Virus record (IMG/VR): IMGVR_UViG_3300035670_000008
Span: 124,001 to 188,000 of that record
DNA length: 64,000 nt
Strand: one strand, 5' to 3'
Both the position numbers and the translations under genes were made by a program. Below, in pieces: positions 1,667-50,156 of the stretch (within the stretch, counting starts at the first letter, position 1; the number at the start of each line of letters is the position of its first letter). The notes under the pieces were generated by a model that did no database searches, was not told the origin of the DNA, and saw only the letters and a list, made by a program, of their open reading frames with translations.

Positions 1667-2197
1667 TTATACCTCTACGACTTCTTTAATAAACTCGATG
1701 GCGTTGGGTGTGATTGTTACTGGGGTGGAGTGTCTTAGGTAGAATAAATCTGCTCGCTCCACTTGAGCCACCGGAATAAATGAGGAGGTGTCGGTGCCGT
1801 GTTTAAACACTGCGTTCTTATATAACCCAATGCTTCGATAGCTTCTAGGAATCCCATCGATTACATCGTTGTGGGTAAGCTGTCCTTCAATTAATACAAA
1901 CCGGCAACGCTGCTTCGTCAACAACTCCAAATCAGGTTCGACTGGCAGGATGATGTAGCCACCGATTGTTAGAGTCGAGCCGGGTACTTCCCGGTCTGTT
2001 AACAGCACTGGTCGGGCGGTTACTTTAATAAAGCCGAAGCACTCTGGCTGGACACTGGAGTATTTATTAGGTGGATCTGGATTTAAGTCTGCTATCCAAG
2101 GCGACGTTTGACCAAAACCAAGCAGCAGTCCGTTAACCGCGTTGACCGTTTCTAGAACGCGTAGCGACTGGGCTTGTTGGAGGACAATAGACTTCAT
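1667..2197 (-). CDS. Putative baseplate structural protein (176 aa)
   Basis: The pattern GFGQTSPW..D.NPDPP......ECFGFIKV...CRFVLIEGQL...YRSIGLY...LFYL resembles small baseplate wedge proteins of large myoviruses. It lies directly downstream of the giant gene. Confidence 0.5.
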   Translation of the reverse strand: MKSIVLQQAQSLRVLETVNAVNGLLLGFGQTSPWIADLNPDPPNKYSSVQPECFGFIKVTARPVLLTDREVPGSTLTIGGYIILPVEPDLELLTKQRCRFVLIEGQLTHNDVIDGIPRSYRSIGLYKNAVFKHGTDTSSFIPVAQVERADLFYLRHSTPVTITPNAIEFIKEVVEV

Positions 2198-2232: not shown

Positions 2233-5200
2233 CTAAGCTATACCTAGGAGTTGGGCGGTGGTCGGGGAGTTGGTGTCCTCCGAGATAATCTGGAAGAACT
2301 CCGCCGGAGACAGTGCGACGTTCGACCCGTCTACAAAGGCAGAGCGGATGTCTGACCGACCCGACATAGCTGTCAACGTTTCGCCGGAGTCTAGGTCTTC
2401 AGCGTCTAGTTCCTCCTCATCTCCTCCTACTAGATTCTGGGATAGATAGTTGTAGATGTTCTGGATGCCGGCGCTAACACTCTTAGCTACGTCCGCCATG
2501 AACTCGTCTTGTGTAACGGTCGTGGTAGGAATTGGTCGTTGGGAGATAACTCCCCCGACGGTCATCCCAATCAACCCGCCCGCTACCTCCGTTATTAAAC
2601 GAGCGGCGCCGGTCTGTCCCGCAACCCCAGGTACACCCGCGAAGCCGGGACGGGCTTGGTCGAAGTGCTGTCCAAGTAGCGTACCAAACGTAGCTCCGCC
2701 TGCGTAGATAAGTTCGCTAACCGCTGCTCTAGCCAGGCCCTCTGTTGGACTGCCGTAGTTCATTAGATACTGCTGCATCCGTCCGAACTGGAGTTTATCT
2801 GCGATTCTCTGGGTGCGGTCGGCAGATTGGGTGTCTTGAGATGGAGACAACAACTGGCGTAGGCTCGATCGCTCGTAGGAGCTAGCCGTAATACCAGACA
2901 TTACGACATCTAGACCTAAGCTAGTCACCTGCTCGGTAAGGGGTATGTCTCCCTGCATCATTGAGAACAACAACGGTACGCCAAGGATACTGACGCCTTC
3001 AGCTAGCCCGTGCATCCGGCTTAGGACTTCATGGCTCTCGGCGCGCTCTTTAGCCGCCCGCTGTACATCTACACTTCTTTGCGTAACGTCCATCAAATTA
3101 TCTCTCGCCTGAGTCACCTCAGCTAACGGACTAACAAAACCAGCAGCCTGTCGGTTCTCTAGATAGGTGTCTAGGTTCTCGTTAAGCTTCTGCTGCACCA
3201 CTTTCTGCTGCTCTACTAGCGCTTCTACCTGTTGTAGCTCCACTTCGCTAGTGTCGGCGGTTATCTGGCCAGTTTTCTCGGTGATAATCTGAGCCATGTT
3301 CTGAGCTAAGCCAGCCATTCCAACCTGGGTGTGGAGGTAGCTGTTGGCGGCTGCCGCGTACTCTAGGGCTCCCATCCCAGCAGTCACCGGTAATCGGTTC
3401 ACTTCTGGCACTGGAGCGGTCGGGCTTGCGGTCGGAGTTTCAACTCCCCCGTAGGTGAGGGCCTGCACTACCTTCTGTTGGAAGTCAATCATCTGGTCTG
3501 GGGTTAGGTTAGCGCCGGCTTCGGACATCATCTGTTGAACGCTGTCTGGTATGGCTCCACCTAACGCTAGAGCAGCGAATACTCCTTTTACTTCTTGATG
3601 GCTTAAACTACCGCCACCGGCAATCTGGCTCTTAACGGCGTCTACAATAGCAGTGACATTATGAGCGAAGGCTTTCGGCAGGGCCTCCCCAGATAACTTA
3701 CCTGCGTCGAGAGCGTATTGTTGGGCACTGAACTCCATAGCCAACGAATTGAAGCTATCGCCGTGTGCTACCAGGGCCTTAGCTAAATTAGTTGTACCCC
3801 CACTGTCTTGAATTTCTGCTACCGCTCGGTTGAACGCTTTGAGCCGGTTCATCATTGGCATCATCAAATCCGTCTGTTGGGAGATACTATGCTCCACCAA
3901 ACTACCGATGACGGCTTTGGTTAACGTCTGTTCACTTAGCTGAGCCCCAGGATTCTCAGGAGTTTGTACGGCTGTGAGTTCCTGTTGGATAGCTGCACTC
4001 ATCGCAGACTGCTGCTCTCGCAGTTTAGCTAGCTCCGTCTGCTGTCTGGCTTCTAGTCCGGCTACGATTTTGTCGGCGGTGTCTACGTTTAGATATTTAT
4101 CCCGTAGTAGCAGCGTGCCTTTACCTTTTATCCGAGCTACTTTCTGTTTAGTAGAGAGACGCTCATCATCTAAAGTATTCTGTATCTCATCTAGAAAGCG
4201 AACGGGCTCAGTTTCTGAATCACCTATCTTAACGTCTAGGTAACTCTGAACGTCTTTGATATAAGACTCCATGCTGGCCAACGTCAATTTACTATCATCG
4301 ACGATCTGACCCTGCTCGTTCACTCCATAGATGTCTAGAGCTTTCCGAGTCACGTCGATGTGGATGTTCTTCATCCCTTCCAACATCGCGTCGGAGATGA
4401 AGTTGGCTTGGAACTTATTCATCATATCCGACAGTACATAAGTCGTTAACTTAGCGTCGTCGATACGCCCGTAGGTAGCTACGCGGGCTTTGATGTGTTC
4501 TGGTAGTGTGCCATCGTCTAGGGCCTTCTGGTAGCTCGCTTTGATAGCTTTCAGCGTACTGCCATAGGAGCTGTTTTCCATGAGGTTAGCTGCGCTATCT
4601 CCTTTACCACTGACGTAATCAGTCAATAATCGCAGAGCGGCAAAGGCCGTTAATCCTTCCGTCTCCTGAACGGAAGGCCCTCTAGTGTCAACTCCATACT
4701 GGTATTGCAGGGCGCTGTTAGCTACCGTGCCTAAGAAGTCTTGACTAACGATTTGAATGAAGCTCTTGCGTTGGTCGTGGTCGGTATAGCGAGACTCCAT
4801 CTGGAGGATATTGGTGTAGCCAACTTCTTTAGAGATAGCTTCCCGGTCGGTGATTCCGATCTCTTTAAGTTCGTCTAGAGCAGACTCACTGATTCGATAG
4901 GACTCAATCCGGCCACTTAGACCGCCCGCCTGTTTCGGTTTCAAGGCGGCGTCCCGGAGATACTGTTGGGTGGTGACCAAGAACCGGTAGCTAACGGCGT
5001 TCCGTTCTTCTGTTTCCCGCATGGCGATTCGCCAGGGGATTATCTCTTCCGTCGTATTATCTACCGCTTCTTGAGTCAACATGGACTGCATTCTGGTTAA
5101 AGCATCTCCCACAGCTGCGTCTGCGTTCTGTTGGATGGCACCAGTAAAGCCCCTCTCAACGGCTGCGTTGAATCCAGCGGTTAGGTCTTTATCCAAAAGC

Positions 5201-8200
5201 ATTCGCTTGAAGCTGATGTCAGCCGATAGCCCACTGCTGATAGGTACGACAGTGTTGTACACCTTACCAAGTAGCGAGCCCCCGGTAATCCCCATGATGG
5301 CCTGCATCGAGCCGAAGTTCTCTGGGTCGGTTACAGTACCCCGCACGTTAGCGAACACCTTATTAACGCTCATCATCGACATTACCGTCGACTCCATCTG
5401 AGCTTGATATTCGGACACCGCCTGGACGTAGTCGTCTTTGGTGTAGCTACCTTTATCTAAGTAGGCTTGGTAGAAGGAGCCAGATTGCTCAAATTGACCA
5501 GACCAATACTCGAAGTTCTCCCGGACGCGGGTCTGCTTCTCGTTGGACAGTTTACCGAAGCCTTCATCCCAAGTTAAGGAGCCTTGTTGGAGCCTGCCGT
5601 CTGTGTCAAACTCAGCAGCATTAATATGAGAGTATTTACCTAACTCCCCGCCCATCAACCCAGTATCGAAGTTGAAGCCGGATAAGGTGTCTACGAACTG
5701 CTTGATTAAGCCGCGTAGCGCCTCGTCTTTAAAGACGGTGTTCTCCGCAATCTCCTTACTACCAATGACTTGTTCTGGCAGCGCTAAGAAGCTGCCGATG
5801 TAGCTACGCAACCCTTCGTAGGCTCGGTTTATCTTCGAGGTTCGGGTGGCTTCTACCTCGCCTAACGCTGCTTTAATCGTCTGCGTAGCGACGGATTTAA
5901 AGTTTTCTGCTTGTTGAATGGACGCAGCCTTCTCGGCCAGCTGCTCTTCTAAAGATTCAACCAAAGCAGGAACTGGGGTTGCCATATTTCTAGCTTTTAC
6001 TAGAGCAGCTTCTATCTGCTCTTTCTCTCTGGATAATCGGCGTAGCTCTACAGTCCGCTGAGCAATCTCCCCGGTCATGTTATTGACTCGGCTGAGGGCG
6101 GCTTGGAAGGAGTCCCCGTCGTAGTCTCCTAAACCAGTAAACTCAAAACCGAAGGCGCTGACTAACATCAAGGCAGAAGCCGAGGTCTCATTAGAGGTTA
6201 GGAAGGTGTTTAGCTCCCGACCCCGTCGGTTCGTTTCTGTAATCTCGATGGCTTGTTTAAAGAGGCTGTTGATTGACTGCCCATCGGTTGGGTTGCTGGT
6301 ATAGAACGGTGCCCCTTGACGGCCTGTTAGGACAGCCCCTAGCCCAGCTCGGTACTCAATCTCATTCTGGACTTTAGCTAGGTTCTCCTGGTTAACTGGT
6401 TGACCACTGATAACGGAGGCAACGATGATGTCGATGTTCTCGTTGTTAACCAGCCGACGGTGTAAGTCTTCCGGGGTGATGTTTGCACTTTCGTTTCCGT
6501 AGTGGTAAGCGTAATCTCTTAGTAGCTTTGCCCACTCACGTAGCTGACTGTTATACTTCGCCAGGTCGGGATAGTCTTGGTATATCTCAGCTTCTTGCTT
6601 CAACAGCCGAACGGTTTGTTGGTCTACTGAGTCAACGACAGCTCCAGTGCTGGGATTTATTATATCCTCGACGCCAGCATACAGCTGCCTAGAAGCTATT
6701 TCAGTTTCGTATTGATTTACTGTGTCTTGGCTTAGCGACCCCATGTAGGCATTGGCTTGGTCTAACCTTGCTTGTTCTACTGGGACATAACGAGCCGTTG
6801 GGTTATTAAGTTGCGCGGCTGCGCGTTCGATGGTTAACTTGCTCTGCTGGTACTCCAACAGATTCTCTGCTACAGTCTGACGGCCTTTAGCGGCTTCTTT
6901 GGTCAGTCCATAATCAATATTCAACCGGAAGTACTCGGGACCCCCGTAAGCAGTACGTTGGGATTCGACGTAACCAATAGCGGCTTCAACCTGGGCTAAG
7001 CGGCTTTGCAGCTCGGCTTGGTTACCTAACACTGATACACCTGATTGAAGTTCGTCGTATTGTCTTTGAGTTAGTTTGTTACTTAGTCCTGTACCTTGGA
7101 TGAAGGTTTCTTCCGCAGTGTAACCGCCAGCTAACCGCCGTTCCAAGTTGGCTTTGATTTCATTTAGCCGGTCAACGATAAAATCGATGTTCTTACCGTC
7201 TTCCTTACCGTAGGCAACTGCTCTAAGCCGGTTAGTGTAATCTATAACCTCCTGCATCTGAGCTAGGTTAGCTGCCTGCTGTTGTGGAGAGCTGGAGTCA
7301 TATTGTACATATCCCCAGCCGATGTACTTCTGCAGCTTTAATTCACTTTCGATAACGTTCTGATAAGCCTTGTGCTCTTCAGACAACCCAGCGTGGGCAG
7401 CCTGGCGAGCTGGTAATTCCGCAGACTTCTCAGCTATCTTCGTGTCTAACTTTCCAATTTCAGTTTTTATTGCGGCTAACTCACCTGGAAGCTTAGTAGT
7501 GTTATCGGCTTGATACCCTTCTAACTCAGTTACTTTATCTCTCATGCCTCCAATTTTTTGGGTGAGGTTCTCAACCTGCCCGGTGAGATACTGGGGCCAA
7601 CCGTCTTCGTTATAGAAGAATGAATTGTCTGGTATTGGCATCCCAACTGGAACGGCTTCAGGGCCTCTTAACCCTAGGTCAGCAACCATAATATTACTTC
7701 TGGCTCTAGCCTGTAGTTGATTTGCTCTTTTCAGCTTGGCATAGAGGCTGTCACCTTGTTCTATAGGGAACAAGACGCTAGCCGCCTTCTGCCTAGCTTT
7801 AACGCCGTCTATACTCTGAGCGTCAAGGTCAGCATCCCCGAACATAAGTGCGCCAAAGAAACCTCCAAATTCACCTCTAGATAAGTATGCAGCTCTTACC
7901 ATCGGAAAGCGGCTATCTCTAACGGTGTTTAGTTGCTGCTCACTTGGATTGAATAAGAAGTTGGTGTAACCTTTGATGTCTGATTGGGTCATTAGCCGCT
8001 CGGTCACGGCGTCTAACCGAGTTAATGCACCTACGTTTTCGGGGGTGACCGTTTGGTTTACACCTAGGTCAGCCAGCCCCGCATTGATATTAGTAAGGAT
8101 GTTGGGTAGTCTGGTGTTGTTTATCTCGTTATAGGCACCCTCTAACGTAGGTATCATATTGTCTACCGCGGCTAACAAACTCTGCCCCCGCGGAGTCAGT

Positions 8201-11200
8201 TGGTTTACAGCTATACGTCCGGTAGCTTGACTAGCTGGGACTACTTCAAAGAGTGCCCTGACGTTATCGTTTACCTGCGCAGCGAACTCTCTTTGTTCTT
8301 GTTGACTGAGTTGATTTAAGTCACTCGGCATATTGGAAGGTATAATACTTCCTTGGGCTACGCTGTTATACCTTGTTAGATGCTTCTCTAAAAACCGCAT
8401 TTGCCCGATAAAGTCCCGTGCGGAGTAGGGCGGCACTTCGTCGGTAAGTCCTATAGCATTTTCTATTGAAAAGACAATTTTATCGTGGTAGGTATCTCCA
8501 AACTGGTTTTGGTTGGTTAGCGTATTAATTTTACGACCTATAGCAGGCAGTACTCTGCTGTTAAGGTTCTGGTAGGTGCTGGCTTGGTTTAAGAGCCAAT
8601 TCCATTTATTATCTACGTTCCGTCTTGCCCGCTGAACTCTGGTGTTGTGTCCCTCTCCTGATTGGTCGTAGGGGTTTCTGATGTCGTAGTAGCGGTAATA
8701 GTTTAGGCTGGCTTGTTGTGTGCGGATATACGCTTCTTGCTCAGCAATTTTTTGCTGTTTATCGACGACTTGAGCTTCTTTCTTAGCGATAGCTGCATTT
8801 TTCTCGTTGATTCTCTGCTGCAGCTCCATCTGGTTTTTAACGTAGCCGCTTCTTGTGTTGTAGTGATAAGCTATCTGCTTACTTCTTTTAGCCTCTAACC
8901 GGCTGATTTCATCCTGTCTATTCTGCAGGGATTCGCCCGATACACCAAAGTTGAGCCGGTCACGCTGTTTAATAATGGTGTTCTCGCCTTTAATGTAGCC
9001 AAGGCTAACGTCTAGGTTTCTAATCCGCTGCTGGTTAACCTTCTGCTCTTCTATGAAGGCAAGCTGTGTTTTGACTGGGTTTTCTGTGCCTAAAGGTACT
9101 ACTCCACTTAGATAGGTGTTTCTTACTTCTACTAGACCCTTAGCTGAACGTAAAGCGTTCTCGATAGTATCTCTATCACCAGAGATTTGGGCTTGCCGTA
9201 GCTTTTGAATCACCGACTCGACTTCGTTCTTAACAGTGCCATCCGTCAGCTCTTGCAGTAGTTCTTGAGCGTATTCAATTTCGTTGGTAATCGTCAGTTC
9301 CATCAGAATCTGACCCTTACTTCCTAAAGCAGCAGCTAAGCGGATGGCTTTAACATCCTTCCTGATAGATTTATCGATGGACGAACTTAGCCGGCGGATA
9401 CCGTTTCCGGCAGTCAGCCCCGCTGCCCGCTCCACCCGGGAGCCCATTCCTACCTCGTCCATCCCGACCAGGAAGCTGTTGACGGCTATATAGGAGGTAC
9501 CGCTCATCCCCATCCGGTTGGCGGTGGCCTGGCGGATGCTGTTTTTGTTGTGTACGAGTTCTACCGCCGTCTCTTTCGACTGCTGCATTAATACCTGCAG
9601 TTCTTGGAGCTCTACAACCTCTTCGTCAGTAATTGTGGAGGTGCCGACACCTTGTAACGCTCCGAGTTGAATCTTATCAATCACGGGCTGTAAGCGTTGT
9701 AGCTTCGCTACTAATTTGAACTGAGCTTCCAATGCCGGGTGGGACTCAGCGTTAAATAGTAGGCTGAGCTTCTGTAGGATATCTAAACCAAGTAACACCC
9801 CTGTCTGAGCGTTACGGTCTGAGCCTACAGTAACTACGTTTAGCCCCCGGCCCTGAGTATCCAAACTATGACGGTCTAATATCTCAATACTTGGCAGGCT
9901 AATCATCCGCGTTGTGCTTAACGATTGCATAATCGTCTTAGCTGACTCGCGTTGTAGTCTCCCTTCAAAGTCGCCTTTATTCCGGTAGTACTCGAACTGC
10001 TGCTGTGCTGATTGGTATAGAGACTCCATACCTTCTAAATATTCCGCGCCAGTATTCATATTGAAGGTATTTTCCACTCGCGTTCTGACTTGCTCCCGGT
10101 AAGTCTCGGTTATGGCATTTAACGCTGCATTCGTAGCTAACGCGCGTGTCCCGGTAGCATTATAGTTTCTCAGATATTCTTTCTGGTAAAGAATATCCTC
10201 ACTATCCTGGTCGTATAGGTGGGTCGTGTTGAGACTGGTATTAATTGGAGACTCCTGCCGAGAATACAACCTATCTAGAAACTCCTCCATGTTAAACTCG
10301 GCTATTCCCAGTTTTGCTTCTTCTAACCGGGTCTCTAGTGCTGCCATAAACGTGGGGTTGTTGGCAGCTTTATGTCTGAACTTTCTGTCCAGCCGAGTTC
10401 TAGTTTCTTCGAGGACTAAGTCAACTCTGCGGTTGATATTAGCCTCGTAGTCTAGGTTATTACCCAGGTTACGGCGAGTGATGTCTGCATAGTCCATCAT
10501 CTGCTGCAGGGCAGGTAGATAGCTGTTACTGTCCTGCTTTTGGTGACCTTGTTTAATAAACTCACTAACGGCTTTAGTCCCTAACGTTCTAGTCTCTACC
10601 CTTCCTGATGAATCAACGTTGCCTGGTAGCTGATGCCGTCCGAAGCTTGTGTAGTGAGTTAGGTACGTATTGATAAAGTCGTAGGTAGTGTTCTGTCCAA
10701 GAGAGAGGCTTAATCCTAGGCGTTTAGTTGTGATATCTTCGTTAAACACCAACGCGGAGAGGTCTGAGTTAATAGCCCGATGCTCCGTAGCGTTAGTTAT
10801 TAGTTGCGGAGTCAACCCTAATTCTGTTTGAGCGATATGTTGCACAACAGCGGCATCCCCGAGGTTGTGCTTCATAATCCCGTAGCTGTCTTGGACTTGA
10901 CGGTGGGTAGGGACAACGTTCTCGTAGACGATGGCTAATTGAACCAAGGCATGTTGAATTGTACCGACGTCGGTCAAATCTTTCGGGTTATAAGCATACA
11001 TCTCTAGTTGCTTAGCAGTTAAGCCTTGGGCATAGTGTCCTTCTAACGCAGTGATATTCTTCATCCCCGCAGGCACTGCGAGTTTACTCGGCTCATACTC
11101 GCCAGGTAATTCAATAAACCGCTGGGTCTGAACGTAGGTGCGGATAGCTTGGTAGACCGCTTCCACCTCATGGAGCATCTGCTCTTCTTCAGAGGTGATA

Positions 11201-14200
11201 GTTTGGTTCTGCTTCAGTTTATTCAGAACGCCTTTGACTTTGTCGGCGTCTGGAAGGGTATATCTAAAGCGGCGGGCAACCTCTTCAATCCCAACGCTTA
11301 GTTTCTCCCCAAGGTGACCAAACTTACCGTATAGCTCCAGGGCTGTGTAGGTGGCGAGCTTCGTCTTCTCACCGTATTTCAATAGCCGCTTTTCACCATC
11401 TTCGCCTTTATCGTCTTTACCGTAAGCCGTCAGCAGGTCTTGAAGCTGCTGGTCAGCGTTACTAACTCCAGAGTCAGTCAGATTCCGTTTTATATCGGTC
11501 TTGAGCGCTTCTATCTGCTTCTCTTGTTGGCTACGAACATCGGCTAACTTACCGCTTACTGACGCGGCTATCAGCTGTATCGTAGCTTCGTCTGCATTGG
11601 CTAAGAAGCTTTGACTGGATGACTGGCCTGCCAGCTCATCTAGAGTCCGTCGGACGATACTGTGGTCTTCGCCGACCGCAGTCAAGTCGTCAGGACTAAT
11701 ATTGAATAACCCAATGCTTTGTGATTGAGCTGCTAGTCGGCTAATCTGCTCGTTTGTTCTTTGTTCGGCTGGGGTGTTTAAGGCATCTTGTAGTGTACGT
11801 AGGTAGTCAGCTACACTTTCAGGGCCTTGACGAGCTAACCGCTCGTTATGTTCGGTCAGGTCAGTTCCCGCTAATTTGTGTAGCTCTCGGATGAGCTCAG
11901 TTGTTTCGTGCCGGCGTAAGGTGGCGCCTAGGTTGGCTTTATAATCCCCAGACCCTCTAATTGTTTCGTGCAGTTTCTTCAGATACCCATCGGCGTCTGC
12001 ATCTAGTTCAGCATTGAACATACTCCGGGAGTCCAAGCTAACCTCAGAGAAGCCCATTGCATTCAGCCGGTCTTGAACGTCTACGTTGCGGTAGATGTCC
12101 TGGGACGCCTTTAATAAGAAGGCCAACAGCCCGGCTGGGCGAGTCGTAAAGTCATCTAAGTGGGTGTAGATGTCTTTGCCATGCTCTTGTCCAGTCTTTA
12201 GGCTCTTGGCTTCGGTGAACAACGTATCGAATAACTGTTGGGTACCAGACTGTAACTTATTCAAAGCATCATCATCGCCTGTTAAGGCGGAGATAACTTG
12301 CTGGGTTAACGCGCTCTCTAAAGTCTCACCTTCTCCAACACCGCCCACTAAAGCAGCTAAGCCAGAGTAGAAGCTTAAAGAAGACTTCAACTTGCTGTCG
12401 TTTGCTTTACTTTTTACTGGGCGTAACCGCAACGCCTCCGCGTACTGAGAGCGATTCTCTGCGTCGTGGGTCGTTAGGCTGGTGCGGAGGGCCTCTTTAA
12501 GCCCCTCAATGTTGGTTGAATCGTCGAAGGTCATTAGTAGCATTGCTAATGCTTCCGCGATGGCTCTACCTCCTTTAACCTTGGAATCCCCTTTACCTGT
12601 AATTAGCTCGTAGATACCGCTTTGCTGTTGCTCTTCTAGCAGGCCTAACCCCATATCGAAGTTGAAGCCCTTGATTTGACTAGTAGATAGCATCGCAAAG
12701 ACGTCTTGCGCGGCTACGCGGGTGGGTAAGAGGTGCTTCGTACCTTCAGTAAAGCCGGCCAAGGCTTCCCATAAGGCCCCCTCGGCTGTCCGCATAGGCC
12801 CTTTAGACATCGTGGTACCTGGACGCATGGCGTCTCGGTCGGCTTTAATCGTCTGGGTGTTGAGGTCTAAGGTTACGGTATTCCGTCGACTAACGTTAAC
12901 TCTGGAGTCTGACACAACGGTAATCCCTTCACCGAGTTCACGACCCGCCATAGCCGGCAGCCGGAACAGCATCGGTCGTACCTGGCTGTCTCCTGTCGAA
13001 CTGCTGTAGTTAAATAGGTTCTTAATGGTGAACGCCATGGAGTTCTCTTTGACTTCACCAATTTTCTCCATAGAGGCTAGGTATTGAGCTGGCTCCAGCT
13101 GGACGTCCTTTCCGTCTGAATCTTTCTGTACGTCGGGCGGGCTATAAACCCCTTTGCGGTAGTAAAAGCCTACTTCATCCGAGCCACGGGAGATATCTAT
13201 GCGAAGGTTATCGCTGTTCAACGACTGGATAGAGTCTATAACCAGTCGATGGACGTCTCTGGCGTCAAGACTGTCACCTACAGCGAGCCGAACGCTCTCT
13301 ATAAAGTTGCCAATATTAAGCTTACCTTTGGGGTCAGCTAAGCCTACTGGGGTTACACCCAGCTCAGCTAGTCGGCTGGTCACCTCAGTCGTCACCTGTT
13401 TATTCAGGCTATTTAGAACATCGGTTAGTTCGACTTTAAGGTCTTTAGCTAAAAAGATAGTCCCTGGCTTTAGTTTGTCGTTGATTTCTTTCTGTAGGGC
13501 AGCCGGGTTAGCTGAGAAGGAGTCTAACGTAGCTGTGGCCTGGACAACGTGGGGTTGAACATATCTCAGGTCATTGTACTTAGAGTTTAAGAGACCGTAG
13601 TCAGATAACTGAGACGCCCCGGTACCGATGACTACCCTTCTGGGGGTCTTACCGCCGATGAAGCCTTTGATAATCTGCTTCTGGTCTTCACTCAACTCTA
13701 CAGCCACCCGTCGCAGCAGTTGGGGGTCGGGGTTTCTTAACAGGTCAGCGTCTTCGGCAGTGTTATCTGGATGGAGCCGCTTAAATTCTCTTAGATATTC
13801 ATCCTTTAAATAATCGAACTGCTGTCGGCTTAGACTACCAAGAATACTGCCGCCTAAAGACGATGGTGCGTCTCCCGCGTTGTAGCTACCAACACTCCCG
13901 AAACTCAAGGCGTATTGAACGAATTCCTTTGAGGCCTCGTAGATAGGTCGAGTGGAGGTTAGGTTCTTCATCCGTTGGCTGATTTGCTCAGACTTAGCAA
14001 ACGGGAAGAAATATAACAGCTGGTCTAGGTTACCTTCCTCGTCTAACTGACCGTTTGGAATAGCATTACCTTGCTCGTCGTACTTAGGTAAAAGCCTACC
14101 ATCGTAACTAGTCTGGTAGTCTCGCTCGTAACGACTGAAGGTTATCTTAGCTAACCGTTCTGCTTCTGCTTTAGCCTCGTCTTTGTTTCGTCCGGCCTGT

Positions 14201-17200
14201 TCCAGAAGAGCGGTCGTCTCCTTGATATACTCACTCTTTTTAATAATGCTGAGCCCGGGCATACTCTGCATCAAACCCATTAGGTTGTGAACGACCGGAG
14301 CCCCGCCCTCTAGTTTCAACAGCCCGCCGTAGCGAACGTAGGCGTCTTGGAACTTAAGTCTACCGGACGAAGCAACGGCTCGGAGGTACTCGCCTGAGTA
14401 GGCCCCCAGGCCTTCCCCGTGCATTAACGCGTAGGGGCTCATAACAAAACCGGTAGTCTCTCCACCTCGGAGGTAGTCAAAGACGTTCGCAATCTGCTTG
14501 TCTTCGCCGTATACCGGCAGGCGGTGGATACCTTGACCAAAGGAGTAGTTCGTTTCGTGGGGTTGAGGGAAGATGTCTACTTGGTTGCTAAACGCCTCTT
14601 TCTTCCCTTTCTCTACCTCGTTTTTATAGATAGCCGCCAACACCGGATTGGAGTTGATGGTCTGCATAATCAAATCATTATAAATACCGCTATAACCTAA
14701 GCCGCCTTGGGTGCGTAGCCCCATACTGACGGATTCAATCACCCGGTCGGTAATGGTAGAGGTGAACTTAGCTACCTGTTGATGAATGGCTTCACCGCTG
14801 GTAGAGCTACCCACCATCGACATTAATCCCTCAACAAAGACGTCAACCGCCTTAGTCATCTGCTCTCTTCTCAAGCCGGCTAACGCTTCAGTCTTGGAGT
14901 AACCAGGGACGTATTGGTCGTAGTCTGCTAAAGCCCCACCTAACATATCGGTTAGTTGAGTTTTAAACGCTACCTTAGCCTTTATCCGGTCTTTAGCCGA
15001 GCTGCCGGCTAGCTGCTCGATTAAGCCCTTGGAGACATTCTCTAAGTCGATGTTCTCTTTATTTTTATTCAGACTGTAGCCTAACCCTTTGCCAATCTCG
15101 GCGAAGTTAGCTCCGATCAGTTTCCGTAGGTTGGTCTGAAAGACTCCTTTGTCTAAGTTACCGAAAGTAGTGTGAACACCACGAATTTGGTACTCATACT
15201 GCATGGAGTGATACATCGTGGTCACTAAACCACCTAAGACATCGAATGCCCCGGCTTGGTAGCTATCTCCGTGGCGGAGAGTCTTATCTACGACTTTGCC
15301 TTCTCTAGGGTCATAGACTTGATAGGTCTTGGCGTCGCCAGAACTATTCTTATAGACCATGCCGGCTAGCATCCGCTGAGTCTTGTTTAGATAGACGACA
15401 GGCTCCATGCCGTCCTTATAACGGGAGTTGATGGTCTGCTCTCCCCCGAAGGTTACGTCAAAGGAGTAACCTGGCTGCCCCTGAATCGGACTAGCAATCT
15501 GGATTGTCGCCCCGACTAACTTAGCCTCTCCTTCACCAACGAGATACCGGCGGCTAAAGATAAACTTGGGCATCTTACTGGGGTCGGTGCTTTCCCAAAC
15601 GCGGGCTTCCTTCCCGCCCATCTGCTGCAGATAGGCCAGGCCCTGCTCAGCGATTGCCGAGTTTCCTCGTCGTTCGACTAACAAGCCTTGATAGTCCTTC
15701 CCGCCCCTTAGATTTAACCCAAAGCGGCTGTAGCCATGTAGGTAGGTATTGGCAATATCGTCCTGCTCCTCCGTAGAGAGAAGGTCTAAAGAGTTCGCAC
15801 TGGTTTTATCTAAGAACAACATCGTCTCAATGTTGTTTTCGTAGGCCTGCTTTGATAGGTTAGCCGACCCAATCCCATAAGACTTTAGTTTATTATTCTC
15901 ATCCAAGACAGCAAACGACTTACTGTGCATGAACTGAGACGGCATCAGTGTAAAAGCGTTGTTCTCTAGTAGGGTTTTAATTAGTCCGTGTCGTTCCTTC
16001 TGATTCTCGGTTCTAGAACTCTCAGCTATTTTGTCGACTGCGTAATAGTTGTCTAATAAGGCAAACAACCCTAGGTCTGGCTTATAACTTGTAGCTGTGA
16101 TTCCAATACTTAATCGTCCGCTTTCCGCTAAGGTCTTCAAAGCCTCGAAGCCGGACGCCTTAACGCTAAAAGGCGTGCCCGACATATTTTTATTAGGGTC
16201 TAACATCTGTTCAATGTATTGAACAGACATAATAGCTTTGTCCTTTCCGTCAGCTGCGGCTCGGCCTAGACGGTCAGACATCTGTTCGTGGATGTCTTCG
16301 TTAACGTATAGAGCTTTGTGACCAGCGCCAGTAGCCACAAGGTTGTTTTCGTATAACGTTTTAAACCGGTCCCTTAGATTGTTAGGATCTCGGTCTCCAG
16401 TATCGTGCTTATTATCTTGTAGACTTAATAACGCATCGGTGGCTGCTTTAATCTGTTTGCTAACCGCGTCGAACGAAGCACGTTGTTTAACAGCCCATTG
16501 GTTGTGCTCTTCGTCATCTAATTTGAATGCTGCTCGATTGATAACCAGCATTTCTTCAATGGTGGTGCTTTGGTCTAAAGCTGGTGTGTAGTTTTGGGTG
16601 GAGATGAAGAACTTAGTAATCTGCTCTTGTTGACCCTGACCTTCATAGAAATAACCAAGCTTGGCGTGGATAGACCCGGTGTTCATATACACTGGTTTTA
16701 TCCGGGCGTCGGCTTGTCCGTTGTATAGCTGTGAAGCTCGTACAGCTAAGTCGTTACCTCCGTAGATACTGGCACGGGTAAAGTCGTCCTGGGCATCTGA
16801 CGCGGCTGAATACCCTTGTGTCCCTATCACCGTTGCACCAGGACGAGTAACTAAGGCAGCCAGCGCGCTAGTGTTCTGCATCTGGTAGACGTAGCCACGA
16901 AAACCTAGATTTCTGTTTTCCTCACCTGCGAACATGGCGAAGATATCTAAGTTACTTGGTCTACCAACTAACCCACTCGGACTCTGGTAATGCCGGGTTT
17001 GTTGAGTCAGCCGGTTACTGATGTTATCTATCGAACGGTTGAGCCGCTGAGCGCCATACTCTACTGCGCGAGTCAGCCCCTGGTTGAGATAACCTTGGTC
17101 GTACTCCGCTATCTTAAGTCGGTTAGCGGTGGTGTCTACATTCTGTTTCTGGTCAGCACTAACCTTATTTCGCTCGTCTTCTGCTTGTTTAAAGCGGCGC

Positions 17201-17571
17201 TCAAACTCCTTAGAGTAATTCTGAATACCTCGGAATGGATCGGTAGCATTAGTGACGAAGTTCGTCCAGAACTTATGGTCAACGTTGACTTCACCGTCAG
17301 TGTTTGCGTTCAGTGACCAACTGCTTAGGTTGGTGGCTACCTCTGGGTAGATTGCAACGTAGTCTTCAAGCGGGATTGATTTTAATAACTCTTTAGGCAG
17401 GCTTTCCCCTGCGTCTTTCAACGCCTGCTCTAAGAGGTTAATAAAAGACTGATATGTTGTAAGTAATGTCTCGTCCGCTACTAGGGACTGCTTTACCGGA
17501 CCGTTTACCCTGGCATCCTCGCTTAGGTAGGTAATTAAGTCATAGTAGTTTTGAATAGAGTAAGTAGACAT
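2233..17571 (-). CDS. Giant virion protein (5112 aa): N-terminal PLD-family domain, two-barrel RNA polymerase, and a helical/hydrophobic tape-measure-like C-terminus
   Basis: Single uninterrupted ORF. PLD motifs HAK (H302) and HSK...GSAN (H549). RNAP motifs LSDYGLL (D1324), K1576/K1590, RMGMSGTSYI (R2686), VLTGRQGAP (R3751), GDYDGD (3815-3820) and LLGKVYN (4102-4106). It lies downstream of the tail-assembly-chaperone genes and upstream of gpU-like and baseplate genes. Confidence 0.8.
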   Translation of the reverse strand: MSTYSIQNYYDLITYLSEDARVNGPVKQSLVADETLLTTYQSFINLLEQALKDAGESLPKELLKSIPLEDYVAIYPEVATNLSSWSLNANTDGEVNVDHKFWTNFVTNATDPFRGIQNYSKEFERRFKQAEDERNKVSADQKQNVDTTANRLKIAEYDQGYLNQGLTRAVEYGAQRLNRSIDNISNRLTQQTRHYQSPSGLVGRPSNLDIFAMFAGEENRNLGFRGYVYQMQNTSALAALVTRPGATVIGTQGYSAASDAQDDFTRASIYGGNDLAVRASQLYNGQADARIKPVYMNTGSIHAKLGYFYEGQGQQEQITKFFISTQNYTPALDQSTTIEEMLVINRAAFKLDDEEHNQWAVKQRASFDAVSKQIKAATDALLSLQDNKHDTGDRDPNNLRDRFKTLYENNLVATGAGHKALYVNEDIHEQMSDRLGRAAADGKDKAIMSVQYIEQMLDPNKNMSGTPFSVKASGFEALKTLAESGRLSIGITATSYKPDLGLFALLDNYYAVDKIAESSRTENQKERHGLIKTLLENNAFTLMPSQFMHSKSFAVLDENNKLKSYGIGSANLSKQAYENNIETMLFLDKTSANSLDLLSTEEQDDIANTYLHGYSRFGLNLRGGKDYQGLLVERRGNSAIAEQGLAYLQQMGGKEARVWESTDPSKMPKFIFSRRYLVGEGEAKLVGATIQIASPIQGQPGYSFDVTFGGEQTINSRYKDGMEPVVYLNKTQRMLAGMVYKNSSGDAKTYQVYDPREGKVVDKTLRHGDSYQAGAFDVLGGLVTTMYHSMQYEYQIRGVHTTFGNLDKGVFQTNLRKLIGANFAEIGKGLGYSLNKNKENIDLENVSKGLIEQLAGSSAKDRIKAKVAFKTQLTDMLGGALADYDQYVPGYSKTEALAGLRREQMTKAVDVFVEGLMSMVGSSTSGEAIHQQVAKFTSTITDRVIESVSMGLRTQGGLGYSGIYNDLIMQTINSNPVLAAIYKNEVEKGKKEAFSNQVDIFPQPHETNYSFGQGIHRLPVYGEDKQIANVFDYLRGGETTGFVMSPYALMHGEGLGAYSGEYLRAVASSGRLKFQDAYVRYGGLLKLEGGAPVVHNLMGLMQSMPGLSIIKKSEYIKETTALLEQAGRNKDEAKAEAERLAKITFSRYERDYQTSYDGRLLPKYDEQGNAIPNGQLDEEGNLDQLLYFFPFAKSEQISQRMKNLTSTRPIYEASKEFVQYALSFGSVGSYNAGDAPSSLGGSILGSLSRQQFDYLKDEYLREFKRLHPDNTAEDADLLRNPDPQLLRRVAVELSEDQKQIIKGFIGGKTPRRVVIGTGASQLSDYGLLNSKYNDLRYVQPHVVQATATLDSFSANPAALQKEINDKLKPGTIFLAKDLKVELTDVLNSLNKQVTTEVTSRLAELGVTPVGLADPKGKLNIGNFIESVRLAVGDSLDARDVHRLVIDSIQSLNSDNLRIDISRGSDEVGFYYRKGVYSPPDVQKDSDGKDVQLEPAQYLASMEKIGEVKENSMAFTIKNLFNYSSSTGDSQVRPMLFRLPAMAGRELGEGITVVSDSRVNVSRRNTVTLDLNTQTIKADRDAMRPGTTMSKGPMRTAEGALWEALAGFTEGTKHLLPTRVAAQDVFAMLSTSQIKGFNFDMGLGLLEEQQQSGIYELITGKGDSKVKGGRAIAEALAMLLMTFDDSTNIEGLKEALRTSLTTHDAENRSQYAEALRLRPVKSKANDSKLKSSLSFYSGLAALVGGVGEGETLESALTQQVISALTGDDDALNKLQSGTQQLFDTLFTEAKSLKTGQEHGKDIYTHLDDFTTRPAGLLAFLLKASQDIYRNVDVQDRLNAMGFSEVSLDSRSMFNAELDADADGYLKKLHETIRGSGDYKANLGATLRRHETTELIRELHKLAGTDLTEHNERLARQGPESVADYLRTLQDALNTPAEQRTNEQISRLAAQSQSIGLFNISPDDLTAVGEDHSIVRRTLDELAGQSSSQSFLANADEATIQLIAASVSGKLADVRSQQEKQIEALKTDIKRNLTDSGVSNADQQLQDLLTAYGKDDKGEDGEKRLLKYGEKTKLATYTALELYGKFGHLGEKLSVGIEEVARRFRYTLPDADKVKGVLNKLKQNQTITSEEEQMLHEVEAVYQAIRTYVQTQRFIELPGEYEPSKLAVPAGMKNITALEGHYAQGLTAKQLEMYAYNPKDLTDVGTIQHALVQLAIVYENVVPTHRQVQDSYGIMKHNLGDAAVVQHIAQTELGLTPQLITNATEHRAINSDLSALVFNEDITTKRLGLSLSLGQNTTYDFINTYLTHYTSFGRHQLPGNVDSSGRVETRTLGTKAVSEFIKQGHQKQDSNSYLPALQQMMDYADITRRNLGNNLDYEANINRRVDLVLEETRTRLDRKFRHKAANNPTFMAALETRLEEAKLGIAEFNMEEFLDRLYSRQESPINTSLNTTHLYDQDSEDILYQKEYLRNYNATGTRALATNAALNAITETYREQVRTRVENTFNMNTGAEYLEGMESLYQSAQQQFEYYRNKGDFEGRLQRESAKTIMQSLSTTRMISLPSIEILDRHSLDTQGRGLNVVTVGSDRNAQTGVLLGLDILQKLSLLFNAESHPALEAQFKLVAKLQRLQPVIDKIQLGALQGVGTSTITDEEVVELQELQVLMQQSKETAVELVHNKNSIRQATANRMGMSGTSYIAVNSFLVGMDEVGMGSRVERAAGLTAGNGIRRLSSSIDKSIRKDVKAIRLAAALGSKGQILMELTITNEIEYAQELLQELTDGTVKNEVESVIQKLRQAQISGDRDTIENALRSAKGLVEVRNTYLSGVVPLGTENPVKTQLAFIEEQKVNQQRIRNLDVSLGYIKGENTIIKQRDRLNFGVSGESLQNRQDEISRLEAKRSKQIAYHYNTRSGYVKNQMELQQRINEKNAAIAKKEAQVVDKQQKIAEQEAYIRTQQASLNYYRYYDIRNPYDQSGEGHNTRVQRARRNVDNKWNWLLNQASTYQNLNSRVLPAIGRKINTLTNQNQFGDTYHDKIVFSIENAIGLTDEVPPYSARDFIGQMRFLEKHLTRYNSVAQGSIIPSNMPSDLNQLSQQEQREFAAQVNDNVRALFEVVPASQATGRIAVNQLTPRGQSLLAAVDNMIPTLEGAYNEINNTRLPNILTNINAGLADLGVNQTVTPENVGALTRLDAVTERLMTQSDIKGYTNFLFNPSEQQLNTVRDSRFPMVRAAYLSRGEFGGFFGALMFGDADLDAQSIDGVKARQKAASVLFPIEQGDSLYAKLKRANQLQARARSNIMVADLGLRGPEAVPVGMPIPDNSFFYNEDGWPQYLTGQVENLTQKIGGMRDKVTELEGYQADNTTKLPGELAAIKTEIGKLDTKIAEKSAELPARQAAHAGLSEEHKAYQNVIESELKLQKYIGWGYVQYDSSSPQQQAANLAQMQEVIDYTNRLRAVAYGKEDGKNIDFIVDRLNEIKANLERRLAGGYTAEETFIQGTGLSNKLTQRQYDELQSGVSVLGNQAELQSRLAQVEAAIGYVESQRTAYGGPEYFRLNIDYGLTKEAAKGRQTVAENLLEYQQSKLTIERAAAQLNNPTARYVPVEQARLDQANAYMGSLSQDTVNQYETEIASRQLYAGVEDIINPSTGAVVDSVDQQTVRLLKQEAEIYQDYPDLAKYNSQLREWAKLLRDYAYHYGNESANITPEDLHRRLVNNENIDIIVASVISGQPVNQENLAKVQNEIEYRAGLGAVLTGRQGAPFYTSNPTDGQSINSLFKQAIEITETNRRGRELNTFLTSNETSASALMLVSAFGFEFTGLGDYDGDSFQAALSRVNNMTGEIAQRTVELRRLSREKEQIEAALVKARNMATPVPALVESLEEQLAEKAASIQQAENFKSVATQTIKAALGEVEATRTSKINRAYEGLRSYIGSFLALPEQVIGSKEIAENTVFKDEALRGLIKQFVDTLSGFNFDTGLMGGELGKYSHINAAEFDTDGRLQQGSLTWDEGFGKLSNEKQTRVRENFEYWSGQFEQSGSFYQAYLDKGSYTKDDYVQAVSEYQAQMESTVMSMMSVNKVFANVRGTVTDPENFGSMQAIMGITGGSLLGKVYNTVVPISSGLSADISFKRMLLDKDLTAGFNAAVERGFTGAIQQNADAAVGDALTRMQSMLTQEAVDNTTEEIIPWRIAMRETEERNAVSYRFLVTTQQYLRDAALKPKQAGGLSGRIESYRISESALDELKEIGITDREAISKEVGYTNILQMESRYTDHDQRKSFIQIVSQDFLGTVANSALQYQYGVDTRGPSVQETEGLTAFAALRLLTDYVSGKGDSAANLMENSSYGSTLKAIKASYQKALDDGTLPEHIKARVATYGRIDDAKLTTYVLSDMMNKFQANFISDAMLEGMKNIHIDVTRKALDIYGVNEQGQIVDDSKLTLASMESYIKDVQSYLDVKIGDSETEPVRFLDEIQNTLDDERLSTKQKVARIKGKGTLLLRDKYLNVDTADKIVAGLEARQQTELAKLREQQSAMSAAIQQELTAVQTPENPGAQLSEQTLTKAVIGSLVEHSISQQTDLMMPMMNRLKAFNRAVAEIQDSGGTTNLAKALVAHGDSFNSLAMEFSAQQYALDAGKLSGEALPKAFAHNVTAIVDAVKSQIAGGGSLSHQEVKGVFAALALGGAIPDSVQQMMSEAGANLTPDQMIDFQQKVVQALTYGGVETPTASPTAPVPEVNRLPVTAGMGALEYAAAANSYLHTQVGMAGLAQNMAQIITEKTGQITADTSEVELQQVEALVEQQKVVQQKLNENLDTYLENRQAAGFVSPLAEVTQARDNLMDVTQRSVDVQRAAKERAESHEVLSRMHGLAEGVSILGVPLLFSMMQGDIPLTEQVTSLGLDVVMSGITASSYERSSLRQLLSPSQDTQSADRTQRIADKLQFGRMQQYLMNYGSPTEGLARAAVSELIYAGGATFGTLLGQHFDQARPGFAGVPGVAGQTGAARLITEVAGGLIGMTVGGVISQRPIPTTTVTQDEFMADVAKSVSAGIQNIYNYLSQNLVGGDEEELDAEDLDSGETLTAMSGRSDIRSAFVDGSNVALSPAEFFQIISEDTNSPTTAQLLGIA
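4933..13644 (-). other. Two-barrel (double-psi beta-barrel) RNA polymerase region within the 5112-aa protein
   Basis: Beta-like then beta'-like motifs occur in the expected order. The catalytic DxDGD motif is encoded at 6112-6126. Boundaries are approximate. Confidence 0.75.
15800..16950 (-). other. PLD-superfamily domain (two HxK half-sites) within the 5112-aa protein
   Basis: IHAKLGYFY...FFISTQNYT (His at 16666-16668) and FMHSKSFAVLD...YGIGSANLSKQAYENNIETML (His at 15925-15927). Domain boundaries are approximate. Confidence 0.8.
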
Positions 17572-17639: not shown

Positions 17640-18215
17640 CTACCGAAAGGTTTTGTCTAAGGCAGCGTTCGATTTTATATTGCTGATGGCATCTAAGGAT
17701 GGTTTGATTTGCTCCTTCATTGCCATCTTGGCTTCGTTGTTACGCCGCTCAATCTCGCGGTTGAGGTTCTCTACCTCCAAGGCGATGGCTTTCTTAATGA
17801 CTTCTGGCCATCCGTAGGTAGCGTAGAAGGCATCTCCACCACTTCCTATCCACTCAGCTAACGGAAGTTTAGTAAATTGGTTGGCTGCTATCCAGCTGGA
17901 TATCTGGTATTTCTCGGAGATGATTTTAGCAGCCTCTTCAAAAATCATATCTCTAGAGAGCATTAGATTCTTGAACTCTTCTTCCGTTAGACTCTCCCAG
18001 CGGCGGATGGGCCACCAGTCGGGGTAGATACAGGAGCGCCCAGCTAACTCTAGAAGAGGGTCGCCAGGCGCGGCGACTGGTGTGGGTGGTGTGTAGTTTA
18101 AGAAGCGGACGGCTCCGTTGTTGTCTCCGAGGGCTGGGCCGTAGTACGCCGAGCCCGAGGTTTGGCGTCGGATTCTTGTTGCCCAAAGCTTGCTCTGTAG
18201 CGCTTCCCCGCTTCT
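17640..18215 (-). CDS. gpT-like C-terminal part of a frameshifted tail-assembly chaperone (gpGT). The track lists only 17640-17963.
   Basis: The frame of the 107-aa ORF stays open for 84 further codons upstream, to the TAA at 18218-18216, with no ATG, GTG or TTG. It overlaps the chaperone 3' end in the -1 frame. Confidence 0.65.
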   Translation of the reverse strand, partial: RSGEALQSKLWATRIRRQTSGSAYYGPALGDNNGAVRFLNYTPPTPVAAPGDPLLELAGRSCIYPDWWPIRRWESLTEEEFKNLMLSRDMIFEEAAKIISEKYQISSWIAANQFTKLPLAEWIGSGGDAFYATYGWPEVIKKAIALEVENLNREIERRNNEAKMAMKEQIKPSLDAISNIKSNAALDKTFR

Positions 18216-42960: not shown

Positions 42961-43476
42961 ATGACCGCCTTAAAGAAGAGACTAGACTTATACGATGACG
43001 CGATTGGGGCGGACGTAGTTATAAGTTCAAACCGAGACTTACTCTTAGACGCCCAGGATGGTGACTTAGCAACCGTAACTGGCTCGGCTGTCTTGGATAT
43101 GGCTTTAAGGCGGCGGCTGTCCACTCCACTTAATGGGTACGCCCGGGTCGTCAAAACCAGTCGAGGATACGAGTATTTAGATGCTAGCTACGGCAGCCGT
43201 CTCTCTAACTTCCTTTCCGCCCCACTAACTGACCTCTCTCTACAAGAAGCAGTAGCCGCAGTCGAACAAGACGTAGTCAAAGATAATCGAGTCGCTGTCG
43301 CCCGTGGGGATGTGAATGAAGTCCAGCAGAATGGTTACACTATCGAGCTGTACTTCGCACCAAAGTCAATTAACGAAATTAAAGCTCAAGACAACACCGC
43401 TGGTAGCTACGCTCAGGACTCTGTATTCAATGCTCAAGTAGCAACTAATTATTCTTTAATCATTCCTTTGTATTAA
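42961..43476 (+). CDS. Baseplate wedge protein, gp25 / gpW-like (171 aa)
   Basis: GDLATVTG..VLDMALRRRLSTP.....YGSRL..FLSAP...VEQDVVKDNRV. It precedes baseplate J. Confidence 0.8.
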   Translation: MTALKKRLDLYDDAIGADVVISSNRDLLLDAQDGDLATVTGSAVLDMALRRRLSTPLNGYARVVKTSRGYEYLDASYGSRLSNFLSAPLTDLSLQEAVAAVEQDVVKDNRVAVARGDVNEVQQNGYTIELYFAPKSINEIKAQDNTAGSYAQDSVFNAQVATNYSLIIPLY

Positions 43477-43477
43477 G

Positions 43478-50100: not shown

Positions 50101-50156
50101 CTTTAGTCCACTTAGGAAGTAACGAATGGTTATTGGCGGGAGACCTTAAAGCGTAG
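47136..50156 (+). CDS. Collagen-like tail fibre protein (1006 aa)
   Basis: Multiple Gly-X-Y runs ([12 protein letters not shown]) separate repeated globular modules. The C-terminal domain ends ...[16 protein letters not shown]. Confidence 0.85.
47958..48038 (+). repeat. Tandem 18-bp repeat ggtatacaaggtgagcag (GIQGEQ) in the fibre gene
   Basis: Four 18-bp units (the last ends CAA) and one 9-bp half unit. A related ggtatccaaggggagcag pair lies near 47310-47345. Confidence 0.9.

Follow-up and report, generated by a model that had tools for sequence, protein, structure and literature searches.

The window analysed here, a stretch of 64,000 nt from the virus record IMGVR_UViG_3300035670_000008 (parent record of 216,563 bp), contains a giant open reading frame (ORF) for a protein of 5112 amino acids. 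The reading that we favour, to which a probability of roughly 0.55 is given, is that this giant protein is delivered by the virion and transcribes the first phage genes, its central single-chain two-barrel RNA polymerase (RNAP) being combined with a PLD-superfamily domain and with C-terminal hydrophobic helices. The ORF check confirmed the reading frame as real, and the nine motifs that an earlier note on this DNA had quoted are all located at the residues claimed for them, including DYDGD at residues 3816–3820 (window positions 6112–6126). The coordinates of all features are listed in Table 1.

Candidate catalytic residues

Two-barrel RNAPs share eight invariant residues, namely, for the beta-like barrel, one Asp together with two basic positions and, for the beta-prime-like barrel, the R-x-P and DxDxD motifs (Ruprich-Robert and Thuriaux, PMC2919709). 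The reference residues given in the same paper are D837, K979 and K987 of Rpb2 and D709, R738 and K743 of QDE-1 for the beta-like barrel, and R446-x-P448 of Rpb1 and R962-x-P964 of QDE-1 for the Arg/Pro pair, and the catalytic motif of QDE-1 is DYDGD, letter for letter that of the giant protein. As counted in deep family alignments of 54 sequences for the beta-like module and 93 for the beta-prime-like module, all eight residues have near-invariant candidate counterparts in the canonical order, which are D1324, R1583, K1590, R3751, P3755, D3816, D3818 and D3820. The order of the modules, beta-like followed by beta-prime-like, agrees with that of the single-chain enzymes (PMC10770324).

In the beta-like module, D1324 and R1583 are each kept in 53 of the 54 sequences and K1590 in all of them, and the three residues lie within a confidently modelled beta-rich region. 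The basic pair has the form R-x4-K in the compact family member L011, a spacing that is the same as that of R738 and K743 in QDE-1. The earlier note had assembled its beta-like motif set from D1324, K1576, K1590 and K1634; three of these are conserved (53–54 of 54), whereas K1576, proposed there as a beta-type lysine, is poorly kept (K in 10 of 54).

In the beta-prime-like module, R3751 is present in 84 of 84 non-gap rows, and G-D-x-D-G-D is found in every one of the 93 aligned members, with Y, F or W as the variable residue, which answers the question of DxDGD conservation in homologues that the earlier note had raised. In the wider family, GD[YFWL]DGD is found in 91 of 102 cluster representatives. 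Downstream of the motif, Y4105 and N4106 are kept in 90–92 of 93 members, and R4206, D4207 and K4211 in 93 of 93. No D-hydrophobic-D-x-D motif is contained in any other ORF of the window.

The invariant K1634 (54/54) has no explanation at present. A match of the segment that begins with it, K1634-G-F-N-F (KGFNFD, residues 1634–1639, 12655–12672 on the minus strand), to the G-Y-N-F-E-D segment with the Mg-binding acid in the E. coli beta subunit (residues 809–814) was rejected as coincidental. The hhalign match between the family consensus GFNF[ED] and GYNFED covers 5 columns, and the reasons for the rejection are that family members do not conserve the acidic position and that its order relative to the basic loop is wrong.

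Insertion within the putative beta-prime-like module

[quoted passage not shown] It is followed by a variable, indel-rich insertion, in which no Pfam or PHROG match was found (residues ~2700–3650). The stretch corresponding to the insertion has 85 residues in P0005/L002 and ~80–150 residues in L008, L009 and L011–L014. As the stretch is this short in most compact relatives, the two blocks are contiguous there, which supports the proposal that the module is split by an insertion in the giant protein. The claim that the block around residue 2686 belongs together with RQGAP and DYDGD, more than 1000 residues further on, is thus supported by the compact relatives.

Predicted structure and profile comparison

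Structure prediction with AlphaFold2 (AF2) was carried out on L011, of which 1157 residues covering both putative barrels were modelled. The model obtained with 14 sequences was poor, with a predicted local distance difference test score (pLDDT) of 55, and the Foldseek search made with it was discarded as meaningless for that reason. With a multiple sequence alignment of 31 sequences, the overall pLDDT was 62 and the predicted template modelling score 0.47, and residues 30–330, corresponding to the beta-like region, formed a beta-rich structure with a pLDDT of 70–85.

When the PDB was searched by Foldseek with the 31-sequence model, ranks 2–10 and 15–23 were taken by RNAP chain B subunits (vaccinia, archaeal, Pol II and Pol III), with probabilities of up to 0.90 and E-values of 0.036–0.1. 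In the search of BFVD, the top match was the family member of Ma-LMM01 (E = 9e-14), and the best non-self match was a Pithovirus RNAP (E = 1.2e-3, probability 1.00), followed by Rpo132 of sheeppox virus (3.6e-3, 0.99) and the vaccinia protein (5.4e-3, 0.97); mimivirus and nucleopolyhedrovirus RNAP entries were also matched, the RNAP matches ranging in E-value from 1.2e-3 to 5e-2. The two libraries therefore agree in that the best non-self matches are second-largest subunits of RNAP, and on this basis the first module is supported as resembling the beta/Rpb2-type module, at a moderate level that is short of decisive. With regard to the AlphaFold and Foldseek comparison proposed in the earlier note, the part concerning the beta-like module was borne out, whereas the barrel around DYDGD was modelled only at a pLDDT of 30–60. 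The presence of a two-barrel RNAP within the giant protein is thus supported by the residue set and by the model of the first module, and the fold of the second barrel and the polymerase activity are what we infer.

The local hhalign comparison of the family profile with E. coli beta-prime and with P23-45 gp96 aligned both exactly at DFDGD, and no similarity to crAss gp66 was found by the same method. Beyond this short motif, nothing that we retain came from the profile comparison with gp66, gp96 and the beta and beta-prime subunits of E. coli.

PLD domain and C-terminal region

A PLD-superfamily domain at the N-terminus is supported across the family by its sequence motifs. Both HKD halves are kept in 14 of 14 aligned members, and a regular expression finds them in most of the 102 cluster representatives. 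The conservation of both halves indicates a complete PLD-type active site. The Pfam family PLDc_2 reaches 22.7 bits (E = 1e-4), which is below the curated cut-off of 27, and is faint in P0005; the BFVD/UniProt table lists the homologue of Ma-LMM01 under the name 'PLD phosphodiesterase domain-containing protein'. The PLD fusion described in the earlier note is therefore borne out by the two conserved halves, although the Pfam score itself lies below the cut-off.

The hydrophobic helices noted near the C-terminus (~2540–3010) proved to be two in number and conserved, and the homologue in MaMV-DC has three hydrophobic segments near its C-terminus.

Table 1. Features of the window; residue numbers refer to the giant protein unless a feature is a separate ORF.
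Feature	Position	Strand	Description
Giant ORF	2233..17571	−	5112 aa, ATG start, stop codon within coordinates, uninterrupted
N-terminal PLD-superfamily domain	15712..16974	−	aa ~200–620, two HKD motifs
HKD motifs			H302-x-K304...STQN and H549-x-K551...D556...GSAN; both H-x-K...[GS][ST]xN halves
Beta-like (DPBB-B-type) module	12412..13824	−	aa 1250–1720; D1324, R1583, K1590, K1634
Candidate catalytic codons, beta-like module	D1324 13600–13602; R1583 12823–12825; K1590 12802–12804	−	
Conserved pre-insertion block	9412..9894	−	aa 2560–2720, R2680..R2686-x-G-M-x-G-x-S-x-I; proposed N-terminal part of beta-prime-like module
Lineage-specific variable insertion	6622..9474	−	aa ~2700–3650, ~950 aa, indel-rich (conservation profile)
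Beta-prime-like core	4372..6474	−	aa 3700–4400
Core motifs	R3751-Q-G-A-P3755 6307–6321; LGD3816-Y-D-G-D3820, DYDGD 6112–6126	−	
Further core motifs		−	G-K-x-Y4105-N4106; Q-Q-x-L-R4206-D-A-A-L-K4211-P-K; within aa 3700–4400
C-terminal region	2236..4371	−	aa ~4401–5112, two conserved hydrophobic helices
C-terminal hydrophobic helices	2959–3015; 2542–2598	−	aa 4853–4871; aa 4992–5010
Downstream gene	1667..2197	−	176 aa, baseplate-wedge/tail-fibre-network; Pfam PF25691 BW3TFN 31.9 bits (cut-off 27)
Upstream ORF1 ('G-like')	18098..18889	−	263 aa, phrog_32670, unknown function
Upstream ORF2 frame ('T-like')	17640..18215	−	annotated ORF 17640–17963, 107 aa, plus 84-codon extension
Mu-type portal	18981	+	giant gene diverges from portal
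Protease	21903	+	
Major capsid	22999	+	
Tail sheath	28822–32409	+	1195 aa
Tube-like gene	32482	+	
ORFs of 1111, 630, 416 and 800 aa	after tube-like gene	+	without assignment
gp25-like and wedge baseplate genes	42961, 43478 (baseplate 42961–44554)	+	
Collagen-like tail fibre	47136–50156	+	1006 aa, collagen-like repeats, dozens of PHROG tail-fibre families matched
TerL	51896	+	
Second giant ORF	54373 to beyond 64000	+	ATG at 54373, at least 3209 aa, runs past window end

Family of the giant protein

The window has no nucleotide-level relative among GenBank phages, as the megablast search against them gave no match, and the scan of the giant protein against PHROGs found nothing and that against Pfam only the sub-threshold PLDc_2. 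Relatives were found at the protein level. The word-indexed protein search gave four full-length homologues of 4505–5173 residues, and the scans of IMG/VR and metagenomes gave about 20 distinct loci with relatives of the giant gene, to which the metagenome scan made to deepen the alignment contributed 5 loci; the word-indexed search with the core profile gave only 2 matches. The full-length homologues span 3055–5389 residues. In the exhaustive core-profile search of 1.8 billion representatives, the family amounts to 102 clusters at 50% identity, nearly all of 3000–5400 residues, with the catalytic core about two-thirds along the proteins, and pairwise identity within the family drops to ~16–25%. 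In bacterial and archaeal genomes, scanned once with a narrow pattern, no relative came to light.

The cultured members are found only in the Ma-LMM01/MaMV group (the Microcystis myophages MaMV-DC and Ma-LMM01, the latter a bloom phage), where the ORFs are labelled hypothetical, and the distant members of the family belong to phrog_31006, for which the function is unknown. The comparison of TerL likewise gives the Microcystis myophages Ma-LMM01/MaMV as the nearest cultured relatives, at ~32% identity.

Gene context

The giant gene lies on the minus strand next to the plus-strand portal gene and outside the plus-strand sheath-tube-baseplate module, and its structural neighbours (portal, capsid and BW3TFN) are conserved in L001, L002 and MaMV-DC. 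The contractile tail that the earlier note had assigned to this phage is confirmed by the sheath gene, and the baseplate-type gene described downstream is likewise identified, its BW3TFN score being above the Pfam cut-off (31.9 against 27 bits). This downstream gene also belongs to phrog_1394, a virion structural protein, and a gene of the BW3TFN family follows the giant gene in the window and in L001, L002 and L004–L010.

Upstream of the giant gene, the frame of ORF2 is extended by 84 codons that contain neither a stop nor a start codon and overlap ORF1 by 118 nt in the −1 frame. The same geometry is found in L001 (8670–9910) and L002 (2611–3842), and the start-less stretch is conserved at the protein level in the three genomes. 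An open, start-free and protein-conserved stretch of this kind makes a G/GT-like frameshift fusion likely, and from these sequence properties a programmed −1 frameshift joining ORF1 and ORF2 is probable; no canonical in-frame XXXYYYZ slippery heptamer was found. Homologues of ORF1, or the pair, adjoin the giant gene in 14 of 16 loci. Its orientation differs among the 16 loci: 3 of them (the window, L001 and L006) have the pair upstream and co-directional, 10 have it divergent, and in 2 it lies downstream. The gpG/gpGT-like pair proposed in the earlier note is therefore retained in that −1 overlapping ORFs do precede the giant gene, whereas its co-directional upstream placement holds for only 3 of the 16 loci.

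Proposed function and alternatives

In the scheme that we favour, the giant protein would be made along with the virion structural genes. Its RNAP core would be of the kind found in QDE-1, YonO, crAss gp66 and P23-45 gp96, where the beta-like module (residues ~1250–1720) would supply the Asp and the Arg/Lys basic loop, and the beta-prime-like module, interrupted here by the lineage-specific insertion of ~950 residues, would supply R-x3-P and the Mg-binding DYDGD. The protein would enter the virion and reach the cell together with the phage DNA; the envelope, or else nucleic acid or lipid of the host, would be the target of the hydrophobic C-terminus and possibly of the PLD domain, and the polymerase would then transcribe the first phage genes independently of the host RNA polymerase. 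Delivery with the virion is an argument by analogy, and packaging, ejection and early transcription are suggested by the gene context together with the precedents of crAss gp66, N4 and P23-45 gp96. In Ma-LMM01, no phage RNAP has been recognised, the early genes lie in one 5.8-kb cluster and host transcription is almost unchanged (PMC5780444); the early cluster and the near-unchanged host transcription fit a phage-borne early polymerase.

Several points weigh against the proposed virion-delivered polymerase. The R...P pair has the form R-x3-P rather than the canonical R-x-P, it precedes D3816 by 61 residues where 30–45 are expected, and P3755 is present in just 70 of 85 rows. The region of DYDGD is mostly helical in both AF2 models, with a pLDDT of 35–60 around the motif, and neither model shows a double-psi barrel there. 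The E-values given by Foldseek are marginal (1.2e-3 for the best non-self match in BFVD and 0.036 in the PDB) with large root-mean-square deviations, and the RNAP matches, being homologous to one another, amount to about one independent match. No sequence or profile search against Pfam, PHROGs or PDB profiles reached an RNAP: the PDB searches with profiles of 3, 14 and 18 sequences gave only coiled-coil matches or noise, and Pfam scans of the DYDGD block of each member gave noise at E-values up to 10. The local hhalign match spans 9–10 columns at 14–24% probability, with nothing beyond the motif. With regard to function, the early genes of Ma-LMM01 are preceded by sigma-70-like promoters, consistent with the use of host RNAP (PMC5780444), and the literature searched holds no virion proteomics or rifampicin data for any family member.

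The alternative that survives best, although we consider it unlikely, is that the giant protein is a tail tape measure with fused PLD and RNAP domains, located in the tail lumen and ejected first, as in the P23-45 gp96 precedent (PMC10770324). It is favoured by the conserved −1 overlapping pair with a translated start-less extension adjoining the gene, a hallmark of the tail assembly chaperones upstream of tape measures, by the baseplate-family gene that comes next and by the hydrophobic Gly-rich helices at the C-terminus; moreover, searches of Pfam, PHROGs and the PDB recognised no tape measure among the genes from sheath to baseplate, and the tube gene is not followed by a small chaperone pair. 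However, the gene lies beside the portal gene on the strand opposite to the tail module, so that the tape-measure slot in which the earlier note had placed it does not hold, and the ORFs of 1111 and 630 residues fill the canonical slot after the tube gene. The G/T-like pair is divergent or downstream in 12 loci (10 and 2, respectively), and as its orientation varies in this way, an operon running from chaperones to tape measure is not conserved. The second giant ORF of the window and ORF119R of MaMV-DC are also more tape-measure-like, with 11 and 17 Gly/Ala-rich hydrophobic segments.

The tail length gives a further comparison. About 1.5 Å of tail corresponds to each residue of a tape measure. 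For the relative MaMV-DH01 a tail of 260 nm is reported. At this rate ~1700 residues in extended form would be required, as against ~440 in the C-terminal, non-enzymatic part of the 3560-residue MaMV homologue. By our own estimate, neither giant ORF fits the rule of 1.5 Å per residue for this tail. The second giant protein is no less tape-measure-like than the first, and a tape-measure role of the first is thus kept as a minor option. Of the polyprotein of RNAP, PLD and tape measure envisaged in the earlier note, the PLD domain, the RNAP-like residue set and the beta-like fold are supported, and the tape-measure slot falls away because the gene is outside the tail module. A bolder proposal, which we regard as doubtful, is that a large, unrecognised lineage of contractile phages including the model bloom phage Ma-LMM01 injects a protein of 3000–5400 residues composed of a PLD domain, a single-chain two-barrel RNAP whose catalytic barrel tolerates an insertion of ~1000 residues, and membrane-active helices, which would double as the tape measure or be assembled by its chaperones.

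It is improbable that the giant protein is no polymerase, but a polyvalent protein of giant size, structural or ejected, whose DxDGD and basic residues serve some other purpose, metal-dependent or structural, and whose matches to RNAP beta in Foldseek are due to a generic beta-rich domain such as a sandwich-barrel hybrid. The lack of a confident model for the second barrel, the marginal Foldseek statistics and the profile-level similarity that stops at the motif all agree with this explanation, and from residue frequencies D-x-D-G-D is estimated to occur by chance about once per 17 proteins of this length. Chance is nevertheless insufficient, because GDxDGD in 93 of 93 members is accompanied by R, D, R and K residues that do not vary and whose relative positions and order are those expected. 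In addition, the best non-self match comes from one and the same enzyme family in both structure libraries.

Equally improbable, or slightly more so, is a two-barrel nucleotide polymerase that is not an injected early transcriptase, whether an RNAP that stays out of the virion and serves middle or late genes, an enzyme like QDE-1/YonO that is RNA-dependent or synthesises primers, or a PolD-like DNA polymerase core: the catalytic motif is nearest the QDE-1 type DbDGD, the role of YonO-like proteins is called unknown (PMC2919709), PolD has the same two-barrel core (PMC10770324) and the literature searched holds no virion data for the family, but the gene lies among structural genes with conserved linkage to the portal, G/T-like and baseplate genes, and its size, PLD domain and terminal hydrophobic helices are closer to the ejected N4 vRNAP, crAss gp66 and P23-45 gp96.

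Comparison with known systems

Among the closest parallels to the proposed virion-delivered RNAP is gp96 of the Thermus siphophage P23-45, which has ~5000 residues and is encoded in a virion module like the giant protein; its embedded single-chain two-barrel RNAP corresponds to the one proposed here, and transcription of the first genes on entry has been proposed for it (PMC10770324). Its motif is DFDGD at residue 779 as against DYDGD, and sequence homology to the giant protein is undetectable beyond this motif. The RNAP of gp96 lies at the N-terminus, a PLD domain is lacking and the remainder is a bona fide tape measure encoded in the tail module of a phage with a non-contractile 800-nm tail, whereas in the giant protein the RNAP would be central and split by an insertion, a PLD domain lies ahead of it, the phage is sheathed and the gene is beside the portal gene on the other strand.

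The crAss-like phi14:2 gp66 resembles the giant protein in being large (2180 residues), encoded in a structural module and, as proposed for the giant protein, a single-chain two-barrel RNAP (bioRxiv 10.1101/2020.03.07.982082; PDB 6VR4). It belongs to the QDE-1-like clade, is packaged in the virion and is ejected to transcribe early genes, whereas for the giant protein such delivery is what we infer. It differs in its motif, DFDID (residue 1361), in belonging to a podovirus and in having no PLD domain, and it is not among the Foldseek PDB matches listed. QDE-1 and YonO share with the giant protein the identical DYDGD and, by the candidate assignments, the same set and order of eight residues, and also the R-x4-K of compact family members (PMC2919709). 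Unlike it, they are much smaller stand-alone enzymes with R-x-P in place of R-x3-P, significant sequence similarity to them was not found, and QDE-1 is a eukaryotic silencing enzyme. The vRNAP of coliphage N4 is giant (~3500 residues), encapsidated and ejected, and its catalytic domain is central between N- and C-terminal domains needed for ejection (PMC13434306, PMC13492108); however, it is a T7-like single-subunit (right-hand) polymerase of a podovirus.

ORF82L of MaMV-DC (3560 residues; phrog_31006; UniProt A0A7J4, the giant ORF of Ma-LMM01/MaMV-DC) is a true homologue, with a profile E-value of ~1e-23 and 23% identity by tblastn, and it occupies the same place beside the portal and capsid genes. 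This giant ORF is shorter, has no large insertion and is annotated as hypothetical or as a PLD-domain protein, and no RNAP function has been reported for it in the literature searched. The 2008 paper of Iyer and Aravind, in which Ma-LMM01 and double-psi barrels are treated, was considered as a prior report and rejected, since it is about the unrelated TV-Pol element.

Significance

No paper in the literature searched connects this family with two-barrel RNAPs. To our knowledge, virion-delivered two-barrel RNAPs are known experimentally from few lineages, namely the crAss-like podophages, P23-45 and, as multisubunit enzymes, the phiKZ/AR9-type jumbo phages. Compared with the known virion-type single-chain enzymes, the new features are the PLD fusion, the central catalytic module split by an insertion, the occurrence in contractile-tailed phages and the breadth of the family. 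If the proposed function is correct, a separate family of ~100 clusters in contractile-tailed phages would be added to the virion-delivered two-barrel RNAPs.

Under the bolder proposal described above, the protein would be, among myoviruses, the first two-barrel RNAP that is ejected or occupies the tail lumen, and it would explain how Ma-LMM01 carries out an early programme without altered host transcription. The Ma-LMM01 transcriptome paper took transcription to be driven by the host alone and found the temporal programme puzzling, and it may need to be re-read now that a phage RNAP is a candidate. One system of the family can be cultivated, namely Ma-LMM01/MaMV on Microcystis aeruginosa, and the finding has a bearing on the evolution of the QDE-1/YonO-like RNA polymerase clade and on the passage of very large enzymes through phage tails.

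Second giant ORF and other genes of the window

The region of 54.4–64 kb was also considered as an early region or a non-coding RNA; both were rejected, as one giant ORF fills it, and no tRNAs, Rfam families, meaningful repeats or recoding were found there. This second giant ORF directly follows TerL and a gene of 218 residues, and its product has 11 Gly/Ala-rich hydrophobic segments. No Pfam or PHROG match, no DxDxD and no similarity to the first giant protein were found in it. The actual tape measure, or else an ejection-channel protein, may be encoded here. MaMV-DC shows the same layout of TerL, a gene of ~211 residues and ORF119R (2806 residues), which has 17 such segments and weak colinear similarity to the second giant ORF. 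Both giant genes thus have homologues (ORF82L and ORF119R) in the phages MaMV-DC (NC_029002) and Ma-LMM01, where they are labelled hypothetical.

With its 1195 residues, the tail sheath protein is of unusual size. Only its C-terminal ~450 residues match sheath families, which indicates that the N-terminal ~700 residues form extra domains.

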